IMG/VR virus record: IMGVR_UViG_3300028592_000004 | Span: 124,001 to 188,000 of that record | Strand: one strand, 5' to 3' | Length of the DNA: 64,000 nt | Shown: positions 57,158 to 61,605 of the stretch, one piece after another | Position numbering within the stretch: the first letter of the stretch is position 1 | Layout of the letters: the number at the start of each line of letters is the position of its first letter | Notes under the pieces: model-generated | Told to the model about the DNA's origin: nothing | The model's database searches: none | Seen by the model: the letters and a program-made list of their open reading frames with translations, nothing else | Translations under genes and position numbers: made by a program

Positions 57158-59512
57158 TCAGTCGAAGGCGGCGCTGATGGCACCGGTCAACAACCCGCCC
57201 CAGAGGCCCGCTTGCTGCAGGCCCACCTGGGCCTCGGGATTGAGGCCCGCTAGGGCTCCCATTGTTTTACCCAGAAGCAACCCACCGAGAAATCCCCCAG
57301 CCCCGCTGAAGGCAACGGTCTTGGCGATGTCGAAAGGCGAAACGGAGGGCTTTCCACCGCTCCCCAGCGAGGCGGCGACGAGCGTACCGCTCGCGGCTGC
57401 AGCGACTTGCGCTGGCGTGCCACCGAAGTTCGAGCCGGGCCGTGCGGCGTCATTCCAGATCACACTCCCGAAGGCGTCGACGGGGATATTCGACAGGAAC
57501 ATTGTCCCCGTCATGTCCTCCGCGGCGTTGGTTTTCGTCCGACCGGACCAGCCGAAGTCGTCGGCCGGCATCTCGGAACCCATCCCAGACAGGTTCGAGT
57601 TCCACCCGTGCGGCGTCTTGAGACCCCAGTACAAACCCGGAGCAGCGCCCAGGCCGGCGCCCAGGAGCCCCAGCGTGCGTCGCATCCGCTTGCCGGAGAA
57701 GTACTGCTCCGGAAGCATGTTGTCCATCAGATAGCCGGCACCGTAGCCCAGGCCGGCTCCCAGAGCTCCACCAACCAGCGTGCTGGAGAGCGGGCTCGGC
57801 CCACCGAGCGGCTTGTTGACCTTCGACCACATGTCCGAAATCCCCTCGAACATCGCGCCCTGCTTGAACATCGTCCAGCCCGGCTCGTCGGCCGGGATCG
57901 TACTGACCAGGCCCTTCTCCGGATGGACGAACCAGCAGCCCTCTGCCTCCGCATACTTCACGACCAGCGGCGCCGCCTGCTCGTACAGAGCTCGCACCCG
58001 GGCGGGGACTTCCCGCCAACTGAGGTGTTCCAGCTCGTCGATCGCGCTCGCTTCCTTCTGGTTGCGCTGTCCGATCTCCTTCAACAGATCCCGGAACTTC
58101 ATGTTGATCTCTTCCTTCTGCTCGGCCAGACGCCGCAGGTGATAGTCCGCTCCAGACCGATCATCGGTCAGGCCGAGGAACCGTTCCAGAGAGGATGGCT
58201 CCCGAGGGCGGGACAGGAAGTTCTGGATGAGGACGTTCCGCTGGTCTGTCGGAAGGTAGCCGTGACTATCGTGACGGATCCCGCGGCCTTTGACCTGAGT
58301 ATCGCGAGCCTCGTTCCAGTGCGGATCCAGGATCTGCATCAGCCGAGTGCCACGGAGCGAGATCCCTTCCGAGCCGGCGGGACCGGCGAGCAGCACCGGA
58401 GCCAACCCGTTGTTGTAGCTCTCAATAATCCGCTTCCGCTCCAGGTCGGCGATACCGCCGTGGAAGAGGCCGTAGGGGATCTTGTCTCGCTCCAGGGCCG
58501 CGGCGTAGGGACGGAGGCCGGCGTCAATGAAGTTCGAGTAGACGAGCGCTCGGCTCTTCGGGTTCTTCGCCATCTGCTCCTTGAGGAGCTTATAGGCCAG
58601 CTGCAGCTTGGGCGAGGAATCGAACGCGGCCAACGGGTCCGGGTTCGACATGAACGGGAACATCGACAGCCCGATCTGTCGCGGTCCGGTCAGGAAGGAC
58701 GTCATCCGCTTCCGTTCGAGGGCGGAGAGCGGGAAGTTGTTCTGCAGCTTGTAGCGCAGGACCCAGGGGATCGAGTTCCAGAACGACCGATACGCGGTCG
58801 TCTGCTCGTCCGACATGTCAACTTCGTGCATCTCGTCTGTGCGATCCACGAGCGGCTTATCGGGAGCGTGGTAGTCGACGTGGCCCGCCAGCAGATCTTC
58901 CAGCCGGCCGACGTTCTTCGGCTCCATCACCTGGCCGGGCGTGACACCGAACAACGAGGCGAAGAAACCCGGGCGAACCGTCTTCTGCTTGATGAACTGG
59001 TGTGTGAACGCGTCCGGCGTGATCCGCTCGCCGGTCAGGATCGACATCGGCGCCGCGAGATCGGACGGGTGATTGACGATCGGCGAGCCCGAGAGGAGGT
59101 AAACGTGCTTGGCCTTGTTCGCCAGGTCCGTCACTGCCTGCGTCCGCTGAGACTCAGGGTTCCGGATCCGGTGAGCCTCATCGACGATCAGAGTGTCCGC
59201 GGCCGGGGCCTTGCCCGCCGTCGCGCCCTCGTAGGACACAACGTTGCCCATCAGCGAGCCGTCAGTGAACTTGGCCTGCTCCTTCGCAAAGTTGGGACGC
59301 AGTGCCGCTGGCACGATAGCCGTGTACGGCTTGCCGGCGTTCTCTGCCGCAGCGATCGAGGCCAGAGTCTTCCCGCTCCCCACGTCGTGGAAGAGGAGCA
59401 TGCGGGACTCTTCGTCCTTCCCGGTCTGGGCGATCCGCTTCTGTTGAGGCTGCAGCTCGACGCCCGGCAGGAGGGCCGCGATCTTCAACTGGTCAACGAA
59501 GTCGGCGTCCAT
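57158..59512 (-). CDS. SF2 (SNF2-like) helicase/translocase fused to a C-terminal glycine-zipper region
   Basis: GSGKT, DEAH, SGSP, EGISL, Q..GRGIR; C-terminal GGALGAGLGYGAG and similar segments. Confidence 0.85.
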   Translation of the reverse strand: MDADFVDQLKIAALLPGVELQPQQKRIAQTGKDEESRMLLFHDVGSGKTLASIAAAENAGKPYTAIVPAALRPNFAKEQAKFTDGSLMGNVVSYEGATAGKAPAADTLIVDEAHRIRNPESQRTQAVTDLANKAKHVYLLSGSPIVNHPSDLAAPMSILTGERITPDAFTHQFIKQKTVRPGFFASLFGVTPGQVMEPKNVGRLEDLLAGHVDYHAPDKPLVDRTDEMHEVDMSDEQTTAYRSFWNSIPWVLRYKLQNNFPLSALERKRMTSFLTGPRQIGLSMFPFMSNPDPLAAFDSSPKLQLAYKLLKEQMAKNPKSRALVYSNFIDAGLRPYAAALERDKIPYGLFHGGIADLERKRIIESYNNGLAPVLLAGPAGSEGISLRGTRLMQILDPHWNEARDTQVKGRGIRHDSHGYLPTDQRNVLIQNFLSRPREPSSLERFLGLTDDRSGADYHLRRLAEQKEEINMKFRDLLKEIGQRNQKEASAIDELEHLSWREVPARVRALYEQAAPLVVKYAEAEGCWFVHPEKGLVSTIPADEPGWTMFKQGAMFEGISDMWSKVNKPLGGPSPLSSTLVGGALGAGLGYGAGYLMDNMLPEQYFSGKRMRRTLGLLGAGLGAAPGLYWGLKTPHGWNSNLSGMGSEMPADDFGWSGRTKTNAAEDMTGTMFLSNIPVDAFGSVIWNDAARPGSNFGGTPAQVAAAASGTLVAASLGSGGKPSVSPFDIAKTVAFSGAGGFLGGLLLGKTMGALAGLNPEAQVGLQQAGLWGGLLTGAISAAFD

Positions 59513-60189
59513 GCCAGCACCCTCTCCAGCTCCATCAGAGGCTTGGCCGAGGACGTTTTCTCCGCGGCCCAAATGCAACTCGGACAGTCGTGGTCGACGA
59601 CGTGCCGCTCATTGTGGGAGCAGCGACACCGGGTCTCGTGCCCGCACTTATGTTGAAAGATCCCGTGCGCTGACGCTGCCTTCGCGACGTCGCTGTTCTC
59701 CTGCAGGATCTTCTTCTTCCGGACCGCGCAGGTGATGTGGAAATCGTACTCGTTGTTCTTGGGGCGTGCTGACAGCCCGTATGACTTGCGAAGTTTCTCC
59801 AGATCCGGAGACTTCACTTTCAGGAACCAGACCCGCGACATTTCCTTCCAGCTCGTTGGCGCGACCTCTTGCAGCGCCCCAAGCTGGTAGTGGAACTCCC
59901 TTCCCCGCTCGACGATGACGTCGATGCCGCCAATCTGCTCGATCTCTTCCGGACGCATGACGCTGATATGCGCATTCAGCGGTTCATTGTTGTGTGGCCC
60001 GGGCAATTCTGCGCCAAGGACCCGCATCGCCGAGAAGACACCCCTGACTAGATCATTCGGGACTGTCAGCAACAGCCATCCACTCTGAGACGCAATCAGC
60101 CGGCCCGCCAAAACGGGGGCATCGACCGCGTCACCCGCGGACTTCAAGAGGTAGCCGGACGCTTCGCCTAGTTGAAAGTCTGACGTCAC
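59485..60189 (-). CDS. 2H phosphoesterase family protein with C-terminal Cys/His cluster
   Basis: Two HxS/T motifs (AHISV, FHITC) about 80 aa apart; GTG start after GAGGA. Confidence 0.75.
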   Translation of the reverse strand: MTSDFQLGEASGYLLKSAGDAVDAPVLAGRLIASQSGWLLLTVPNDLVRGVFSAMRVLGAELPGPHNNEPLNAHISVMRPEEIEQIGGIDVIVERGREFHYQLGALQEVAPTSWKEMSRVWFLKVKSPDLEKLRKSYGLSARPKNNEYDFHITCAVRKKKILQENSDVAKAASAHGIFQHKCGHETRCRCSHNERHVVDHDCPSCIWAAEKTSSAKPLMELERVLAWTPTSLTS

Positions 60190-60430
60190 GGACCTTTCCT
60201 CGTAGAAGTCCAGGTCACGTCTCCCCGGATCCCCTCCCGGGGTCCTGACGGAAAATGAATTTCCGCCTCGCAACGGCATCGCAGGCACATCCGTTGCTCC
60301 TCCATAGTCTCCGCAGTTTCCCATGAGACCGTTCCTGGGAGCCCTCGCAATCCTCGCGTGAAGCTCCCTCCTAACCGGGCAGTGCCATGCCCAGACGTGA
60401 CGCGTCTCACCTTAACCGAAATCCGTACTG
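60190..60430 (-). ncRNA. Candidate structured GGA-rich RNA (CsrB/RsmZ-like sponge or structured leader)
   Basis: Largest intergenic gap; eight consecutive hairpins; 17 GGA triplets by manual count. Confidence 0.55.
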
Positions 60431-60434
60431 GTCA

Positions 60435-60809
60435 CTACTCATCTTCATTGAGATTGGGGACTTCCAGGAAAACACGGCTGACGGATTCAAATGTGATCCG
60501 GATCCAGGTTGGGGTCAGATCTTCGAGGACTTGTGTTCGGTGTTCGACCAACCTGTACACGCAGCGCTCAACTGCGTTGTACAGGTTGTCCTCGGACCGA
60601 ATTGCCTGCAGTCGGTTGACAACTGGGCTCAAACGTCGCATCAATCCCAGAAAGATCTTCTGCAGACGCCTGCCTTCGAGGTCCGACTCGATGGCAAGGC
60701 GGGACAGAGGCTCTCCGCGCTCAACGCATTCCATCACCGCCGCGGTGATGGACATTGCCAACGTTTGCCAGATCAGCCATTCCTGGGTGATCGGCAGCTT
60801 CCTAGCCAT
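60435..60809 (-). CDS. Hypothetical protein
   Basis: Start MARKLP overlaps the caspase stop; 124 aa. Confidence 0.5.
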   Translation of the reverse strand: MARKLPITQEWLIWQTLAMSITAAVMECVERGEPLSRLAIESDLEGRRLQKIFLGLMRRLSPVVNRLQAIRSEDNLYNAVERCVYRLVEHRTQVLEDLTPTWIRITFESVSRVFLEVPNLNEDE

Positions 60810-61605
60810 TGGAGAAGACTTCCCACAGCTGTGCGTACTTCGGTCCCGAGAGGACCGGAGTCTGCGGGCACTCATCACTCGGCAGGTGATTTCGGACGAG
60901 ACGGAACAGATCCCGGTAGGTCGCCTGCGGAGGCAGCTTCGGGATCAGCTGCTGCAGGTAGTACGAGAAGGCACCCTTCGGGCGCCCGTCGAACTCCGTG
61001 TCGAAGGCGAACTCCTTGTCGCTGCAAGCGGACATGCAGACGACCCCCTGCGTCATCCACGCCAGGGGCATGTGCTCTTGCTTGAGGGCGGTATCGATCG
61101 ACTTCTGCAGCCCCTTGAACTGCGGCAGATCGTACGGAGGCAGGAAGCGTTTCTTCACCCGCTTGCCGGGCTTCTTCTTCGGAGCGGACCGCATGACCGT
61201 TCCGGAGTGGCAGCTGTCGGCGATCAGAGCTACCCGAGCTTCCGGCTTGCGGTTCTGGTCGAACAGGAGGTACAGCTCATCGTCCAGAATCAGCTCGTTG
61301 TCGAGGTCGTAGGGGCACCAGGCTTCGTCTCGACCGTCGATCTCATCGCCATCCAAGTCGGGCACCCAGGTCCCGTGGCCGGCGAAGGTGATGATGGCCA
61401 ACTCGTTCGGCCCGGTGGCCTGCAGGAGTTCCGTCAGACCCTTCAGGATGTTGGCGCGGGTGGCCTCCTTTTCGAGCAGAACGTTCTGAACCTGGACACC
61501 TCGCTCGACAAGCAGGGTGGCCCAGTCCTGAGCGTCGTTGACAGCCCCGTAGAGCTCCATCTCCGAGTTGGCGTAGTTGATGCCGATGCACAGTGCACGC
61601 TTCAT
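60802..61605 (-). CDS. Metacaspase / caspase-family (C14) peptidase
   Basis: KRALCIGINY, L.G.VND, FAGHG (His), DSCHSG (Cys), GAFS, QTP. Confidence 0.92.
   Translation of the reverse strand: MKRALCIGINYANSEMELYGAVNDAQDWATLLVERGVQVQNVLLEKEATRANILKGLTELLQATGPNELAIITFAGHGTWVPDLDGDEIDGRDEAWCPYDLDNELILDDELYLLFDQNRKPEARVALIADSCHSGTVMRSAPKKKPGKRVKKRFLPPYDLPQFKGLQKSIDTALKQEHMPLAWMTQGVVCMSACSDKEFAFDTEFDGRPKGAFSYYLQQLIPKLPPQATYRDLFRLVRNHLPSDECPQTPVLSGPKYAQLWEVFSNG

Follow-up and report, generated by a model that had tools for sequence, protein, structure and literature searches.

We found that a GGA-rich hairpin cluster in a phage genome is a real non-coding RNA, and that it is one copy of an uncatalogued structured RNA family of about 190-230 nt that many phages carry upstream of a 2H phosphoesterase gene. 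The cluster lies on the minus strand at 60190-60430 of the window, the 64,000-nt stretch of DNA analyzed here (positions 124,001 to 188,000 of IMG/VR record IMGVR_UViG_3300028592_000004, also Ga0247822_10000001, a 229-kb viral contig with 63% GC). The original prediction had proposed that the cluster is a CsrA sponge. We found the family in about 65 distinct phage contigs. Its function can only be inferred; we think that it most likely acts as a cis leader, with a stand-alone RNA working together with the 2H enzyme as a nearly equal rival.

To determine whether the GGA enrichment was real, we counted GGA triplets on the minus strand. The region 60190-60430 holds 17 GGA in 241 nt, the maximum among 241-nt windows across the whole 64 kb (mean 5.8, sd 2.2). 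Base composition predicts 6.9, so the 4-5 expected in the original prediction was slightly low. Dinucleotide-preserving shuffles of the region gave 11.0 +/- 2.2, and only 0.45% of them reached 17. The enrichment is therefore real, but much of it comes from GG and GA richness (G = 37%). The single-stranded linkers read as originally described, although about half of the GGAs lie in stems. We detected no repeats of the element elsewhere in the window.

We next folded the region. Of the eight hairpins originally listed, the six internal ones (60377-60392, 60337-60368, 60306-60330, 60270-60297, 60247-60267 and 60223-60242) are present in both the MFE and the centroid fold, with mean pair probabilities of 0.78-0.99. 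Five of them correspond to helices that covary across relatives; the sixth (60337-60368) is conserved in position and apex, but its pairs were not resolved in the MAFFT alignment. By contrast, the first (60393-60407) and last (60190-60211) hairpins compete with long-range helices: P2, 60393-60401 paired with 60214-60222 (9 bp, P 0.91), which is supported by family covariation, and P1, 60421-60427 paired with 60187-60193 (P 0.65), which includes the GUG at 60189-60187. The whole-region fold z-score is only -1.75, and we found no intrinsic terminator or sigma-70 promoter. The observation in the original prediction thus holds. The features of the locus, all on the minus strand, are as follows.

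60214-60401 (-): core of the structured RNA, from the P2 5' strand to its 3' strand; member of the 2H-SAK-associated RNA family
60393-60401 (-): P2 5' strand (GUCACGUCU), which pairs with 60214-60222; the equivalent closing helix covaries across the family (alignment columns 45-65 with 302-322)
60377-60392 (-): hairpin Ha (GGGCA / UGGCAC / UGCCC), P 0.95; the family helix covaries
60370-60376 (-): conserved single-stranded motif GGUUAGG, nearly invariant columns in the 65-sequence alignment
60337-60368 (-): hairpin Hb, P 0.91, with GGA at the apex (60351-60353)
60306-60330 (-): hairpin Hc, P 0.78, preceded by linker AGGAAC (60331-60336); the family helix at columns 145-149/172-176 covaries
60298-60305 (-): purine linker AUGGAGGA (family consensus uAGGuGGA)
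60270-60297 (-): hairpin Hd (7-bp stem, loop AUGUGCC...GAUG), P 0.99; the family helix at columns 187-193/231-237 covaries, and the loop motif AAU(G/A)(C/U)C is conserved
60247-60267 (-): hairpin He (8-bp stem), P 0.99; the family helix at columns 244-247/267-270 covaries
60223-60246 (-): hairpin Hf with its base (GGACC, stem, loop GAGGGGAU, stem), P 0.79, the most conserved element of the family; columns 279-284/296-301 covary, and the GGGGAU loop is nearly invariant
60214-60222 (-): P2 3' strand (AGACGUGAC)
60421-60434 (-): 5' strand of the outer helix P1 (UACGGAU plus UGAC), which pairs with 60187-60193 and 60181-60184
60193-60201 (-): Shine-Dalgarno-like GAGGAAAGG of the 2H gene, ending 3 nt before the GUG at 60189
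59485-60189 (-): 2H-SAK phosphoesterase gene (PF22547), most likely starting at GUG 60189-60187, 24 nt after the P2 3' strand
60435-60812 (-): upstream 124/125-aa ORF with no family match; its stop codon is TAG at 60435-60437
60802-61605 (-): caspase-like Peptidase_C14 gene, syntenic with the RNA and 2H in the viral loci L082, L087 and L137

All genes around the element lie on the minus strand and are tightly packed, in the order methyltransferase, glycosyltransferase-like, caspase-like Peptidase_C14, the 124-aa ORF, the region in question, 2H-SAK and an SNF2-type helicase.

To determine whether the region is coding, we examined the reading frames upstream of the 2H core. A 279-aa ORF runs from AUG 60324, with the frame upstream of the 2H gene open for 45 codons, and the public gene call starts at GUG 60288. 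However, homologs are mostly about 180 aa, and their N-termini and almost all tblastn matches begin at residue ~46-50 of that ORF, where GUG 60189 lies. Codon-position GC bias is flat through 60430-60230 and becomes coding-like only near 60225. In an AlphaFold model, residues 1-45 have a pLDDT of about 50 and no secondary structure, whereas the 2H core scores 85-97. In one related locus (L174), the in-frame extension has a stop codon. These results place the most likely start at GUG 60189, so about 245 nt are intergenic. We also considered a small upstream ORF (AUG 60290 to UGA 60186) in the +1 frame, which could be translationally coupled to the 2H start through the overlapping GUGA. GGAGGA lies 7-9 nt before its AUGUG motif, and L082 has a similar AUGUG motif and an ORF ending 2 nt before its AUG. 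We rejected this idea because the "AUG" is AAU(G/A) across the family and lies far from any 2H start in most members, and because reading frames through Hf differ between members.

Plain sequence searches for relatives of the element gave nothing, whether against a phage GenBank collection or by blastn and nhmmer against the first 80 viral 2H loci; the family is too diverged for such searches and became visible only with a covariance model. Three contigs from other samples (L175-L177) are the same phage (99.1-100% identical), but their RNA is 100% identical and thus gives no local covariation. The closest 2H homolog, P0002 (61% identity), sits in loci L082, L083 and L084 behind a caspase gene (41% identity to that of the window), with a 262-nt gap, and L087 carries a 92%-identical copy of that gap. 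L082 and L087 differ by 20 substitutions and no indels. Six of these form three compensatory pairs and three more are wobble-preserving, such that all nine substitutions at paired positions keep the pairing; none of the 20 shows third-codon-position bias. The outer helix of that structure covers the SD and AUG of the 2H gene and keeps pairing through GC to AU and GC to GU changes. A search anchored on the caspase gene found seven viral caspase loci, none with 2H nearby; the caspase-RNA-2H synteny is confined to the window, L082-L084, L087 and L137.

We then built a covariance model from the L082/L087 element (R1). R1 did not recover the window copy full length, giving only collinear local hairpin hits, but it hit many other 2H-SAK loci full length on the 2H strand, 0.5-1.3 kb upstream of the gene; L137 scored E 7e-6, followed by L125, L026, L081, L044, L046, L105, L060, L102 and L023. 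A motif scan (Hf motif plus GGTTAG 126-173 nt upstream) found the RNA in 109 of the loci examined, about 65 of them distinct and including the window. The alignment of 65 sequences (A11) shows, from 5' to 3', a closing helix; Ha followed by nearly invariant GGUUAGG; Hb with apex consensus GCAGGGAUGC; a short linker; Hc; the purine linker uAGGuGGA, whose GG.GG columns are conserved in A11 and in a further alignment (A12); Hd with an AAU(G/A)(C/U)C ... GAAAGUC-type loop or insert; He; and Hf, GGACC-stem-(A)GGGGAU-stem-GGGGCU. RNAalifold predicted 37 pairs, of which 36 show compensatory changes. As a control, we slid the 3' partners by 1-3 columns: 91.9% of pair cells are canonical in the true register against 34-44% in the slid ones, and the covariation score is 0.67 against 0.11-0.17.

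To test objectively whether the window copy belongs to this family, we built a second model (R2) of the 5' domain from 34 relatives, leaving the window out. R2 hit 60400-60298(-) over the full model at 29.2 bits (E 8.4e-5), the only significant hit in the 64 kb, where the next hits have E >= 1. RNAalifold on the MAFFT alignment used for R2 kept only the Ha helix, so R2 is mostly a sequence profile. The purine linker aligns in the R2 hit, and the 3' half of the window copy fits the family alignment and the Hf motif. Hairpin by hairpin the copy also fits: Ha has the same loop type and flanks, with 3 of 5 pairs compensatory against L082, GGUUAGG is present, the Hb apex is CGAGGAUUG, and Hf (GGACCCCGG-GAGGGGAU-CCGGGGAG) has compensatory pairs against L082, L087 and L174. 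The family may also contain pseudoknots; one candidate would pair the Hf loop GGAUC with the GAUCC-type linker before Hc.

To assess linkage to 2H-SAK independently of the protein, we scanned IMG/VR with a pattern from Hf alone. Of 45 matches, 39 have a 2H-SAK gene 557-1262 nt downstream of the motif on the same strand and four lack enough downstream sequence to judge. The two with room but no 2H (L198 and L217) also lack the 5' domain of the RNA, so they are chance matches; the rule of RNA then co-oriented 2H thus holds in 39 of 39 evaluable matches. The same pattern matched at least 120 stretches in 185,579 species-representative genomes. Of the 80 matches on which we ran R2, only one (L298, a 123-kb MAG contig labelled Aquaspirillum) has the 5' domain, and the other 79 are chance matches in GC-rich genomes. 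The RNA is therefore essentially phage-restricted.

Further investigation of the relatives revealed variation around the RNA. A typical locus (L188) reads 329-aa protein, RNA, 121-aa membrane protein, tRNA-Asn(GTT), then 2H-SAK fused to DUF5661, and tRNA-Asn sits directly before 2H in at least seven loci. In the lower-GC subgroup, a -10-like box (GTATAAT, or TGTTAAAAT, an extended -10) lies 3-8 nt before the closing helix, and a U-rich tract follows it; T-richness after the helix falls with GC content (r = -0.50). About half of members have an SD plus start codon within 45 nt after the helix, whereas in nearly half no ORF start was found within that distance.

Rfam 15 (4227 families) gave no hit at gathering thresholds in the window or in 15 relatives, apart from tRNA genes; at E <= 10, the only hit on 59900-60700 was a spurious snoRNA match, and E-value searches of five relatives returned only tRNA genes. 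Word searches of the literature collection consulted found no description of this RNA. For the 2H protein, we found no PDB sequence homolog and no PADLOC hit. Foldseek gave only weak matches (all E > 0.08), although 2H enzymes are prominent among them: phage Acb1, coronavirus ns2, a Burkholderia phage phosphodiesterase and ASCC1. This agrees with the Pfam assignment but does not define a substrate.

Taking these results together, our analysis shows that 60214-60401 is non-coding, is not a reiterated GGA sponge, and is one copy of a conserved, structured RNA family with a closing helix around six hairpins, in which each hairpin or linker carries its own motif (GGUUAGG, an apex (C)AGGGAUG, uAGGuGGA, AAUGCC, and GGACC...GGGGAU...GGGGCU), carried upstream of and in the same orientation as a 2H-SAK gene; in this phage the RNA abuts the 2H gene directly and a further outer helix is predicted to pair with the GUG start codon and the bases just before it. 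How the RNA works, including any ligand or protein binding, is inferred. We hold this explanation as a whole with moderate confidence, and its cis-acting part only tentatively, as somewhat less likely than not. In this view, the folded core is a platform for an unidentified ligand or protein, and the closing and outer helices would set how accessible the 2H ribosome-binding site and start codon are; in relatives that have a U-tract after the closing helix, they would instead set how much transcription reads through. The extra GGA/GGAGG-rich linkers of this copy would be a lineage-specific, purine-rich version of the family's linkers and may simply be Shine-Dalgarno-like standby sites. The P1 pairing, the outer helix of L082/L087, the -10-like box and U-rich tract of relatives, and the SD plus start codon near the 3' end in about half of members fit a cis role. 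However, the gene immediately downstream differs among relatives (a small membrane protein, tRNA-Asn, a response regulator, or 2H itself), and predicted start-codon occlusion is seen only for the window, L082 and L087.

A stand-alone stable RNA remains possible and is nearly as well supported. In this reading, a discrete molecule of about 200 nt with paired ends would work with the co-encoded 2H-SAK enzyme as a scaffold or partner, as a substrate carrying a 2',3'-cyclic phosphate end, or as a decoy. The covarying closing helix joins the two ends, many relatives have the -10-like box and the U-rich tract, linkage to 2H-SAK is near-obligate even when other genes or a tRNA-Asn lie between them while the immediately downstream gene is not conserved, and the conserved nucleotides sit largely in loops and linkers, as in protein-bound RNAs. 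By contrast, the constant order and orientation also fit a leader, the window has no terminator between the RNA and 2H, the RNA overlaps the translation start region in the window and in L082/L087, and there is no evidence of processing sites.

The interpretation in the original prediction was only partly supported. It was right that this is a non-coding, multi-hairpin RNA rather than an ORF, and its caveat that the element might be a structured leader or another RNA class was the correct branch. Its main claim, a CsrB/RsmZ-like sponge acting as the release element of a late-gene Csr switch, is not supported, and we consider very unlikely both a sponge titrating host or phage CsrA and a CsrA-controlled leader, in which CsrA would bind the conserved GGA apex together with the Shine-Dalgarno region to repress the 2H gene. 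The GGA density, with GGA in the Hb apex, the Hf loop and the linkers, speaks for it, and the Hb apex consensus GCAGGGAUGC, with GGA in 49 of 65 members, resembles the CsrA SELEX consensus RUACARGGAUGU, so a single CsrA contact cannot be excluded. However, neither a signature motif search nor tblastn with E. coli and B. subtilis CsrA detected a CsrA homolog in the 64-kb window, no Rfam Csr/Rsm family matched, and the window has no terminator. The hairpins each carry a different conserved motif, not a reiterated A(N)GGA unit, and the defining linkage of the family is to a phosphoesterase gene, not to Csr targets. GGA enrichment upstream of 2H homologs is not a family trait. The window copy is the GGA-densest member at 7.7 per 100 nt, the others average 3.2 +/- 1.1 with a maximum of 6.6, and only three GGA positions (the Hb apex, the GGACC at the Hf base and the Hf loop) are conserved in at least half of 65 members. 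Finally, a protein-coding reading of the stretch is very unlikely given the codon-position, homolog and substitution data above, and chance hairpins are less likely still.

We compared the element with known systems. Like CsrB, RsmY and RsmZ, it is a multi-hairpin non-coding RNA with GGA in some loops and linkers, but it differs from them in the respects listed above. It resembles large riboswitches or structured 5' leaders, for example aptamers of the cobalamin, lysine or T-box size class, in its length of about 200 nt, its closing helix around a multi-helix core, its strong covariation and its constant position 5' of, and co-oriented with, the same gene family, but it matches no Rfam riboswitch, the gene directly downstream varies, and an expression platform is not demonstrated across the family. 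As with Y RNA and Ro (Rsr) and RtcB RNA-repair loci, or HEARO/omega-RNA with IscB, a structured RNA with paired termini is genetically coupled to one protein family, here one with RNA-end chemistry (a 2H enzyme acting on cyclic phosphates), and it is phage-borne and often beside a tRNA gene; however, it has no tRNA-like module and no Ro, RtcB or IscB nearby, and any physical association with the protein would be inferred. GOLLD and ROOL are likewise phage-encoded, supported by covariation, of unknown function and frequently adjacent to a tRNA gene, but they are much larger (more than 500 nt) and have a different architecture, and the element described here is linked specifically to one enzyme gene. 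The family and its linkage thus appear to be new, although in kind the RNA resembles structured leaders or RNA genes fixed beside a partner protein gene.

A more speculative and, on present evidence, unlikely possibility is that the family is a riboswitch-like sensor, whose core would bind a nucleotide-derived signal such as a 2',3'-cyclic nucleotide, a cyclic oligonucleotide or an ADP-ribose-derived immune messenger. Binding would switch on the downstream operon encoding a 2H phosphodiesterase able to destroy that class of molecule; the weak best structural neighbors of the enzyme include the anti-CBASS nuclease Acb1 and viral 2',5'-phosphodiesterases. This would be a phage counter-defence gene under direct RNA sensing of the host's alarm signal.

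The striking GGA richness of this locus is a feature of its lineage, not evidence for a phage Csr circuit. If the family assignment is right, the window contains one copy of a widespread phage RNA, well supported by covariation, that occurs in dozens of distinct viral contigs with GC content from 42 to 70%, including several of about 200 kb. The RNA is almost obligately coupled to the 2H-SAK phosphoesterases, enzymes that act on cyclic phosphates, which is the chemistry of RNA repair and of cyclic-nucleotide immune signalling. A dedicated RNA beside such a gene gives a concrete handle on what these phage enzymes do, whether the RNA is a sensor or leader or a partner or substrate, and it would add a new RNA class to phage biology.

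Several features of the surroundings of the RNA were noted in the window and in relatives (loci designated by L numbers). In many relatives (L023, L026, L037, L051, L071, L081, and L188), a tRNA-Asn(GTT) gene lies directly upstream of the 2H-SAK gene, between it and the RNA (for example, L188:6266-6338). By contrast, the window has no tRNA at this locus. In several relatives, a small multi-pass membrane protein of about 120-138 aa is encoded directly after the RNA (L026:2367-2783; L188:5755-6120); this protein showed no significant family match, with only a weak TgpA_N hit. A caspase-like Peptidase_C14 gene lies immediately upstream of the RNA in the lineage of this phage (window 60802-61605) and in three relatives (L082:3947-4738, L087:546-1337, and L137:684-1472), but not in the bulk of the family. 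Seven other viral caspase loci have no 2H nearby.

In L033, L048, L050, L067, L053, L061, and L071, about 75 nt upstream of the RNA, a TTGACAA lies about 45-50 nt upstream of the -10-like box, with an inverted repeat in between (for example, AACTACCGA...TCGGTAGTT). This is an unusual promoter-region architecture, possibly an operator. In the window, TAAGGT (of the form TAnnnT) at 60409-60414 on the minus strand lies 7 nt before the 5' strand of the closing helix P2, the same place as the -10-like box of lower-GC relatives, although this is only a weak hint that the RNA has its own promoter here.

Among the 80 species-representative genome contigs tested, the only copy of the RNA found was L298:5603-5730, in a 123-kb MAG contig labelled Aquaspirillum sp. 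This contig could be a prophage or a mis-binned phage, and it may hint at a betaproteobacterial host for one subgroup.

Comparison of the window with near-identical phage variants (L175 and L176; 99.1-99.2% identity) revealed that 143 nt in the Cys-rich C-terminal part of the 2H gene (window 59530-59672, minus strand) are replaced by 17 nt in the variants, resulting in 225-aa instead of 234/267-aa products. The SNPs cluster on either side of the RNA, with none between 59818 and 61078. In the SNF2-type protein (window 57158-59578, minus strand), the C-terminal, Gly/Ala-rich part of the helicase ORF (residues ~510-720) is homologous to separate genes found just downstream of 2H-SAK in many other loci (L013, L024, L030, L037, L058, L064, L070, and L082). 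Thus, the 2H neighbourhood seems to include a second conserved partner, which is fused to a helicase here.
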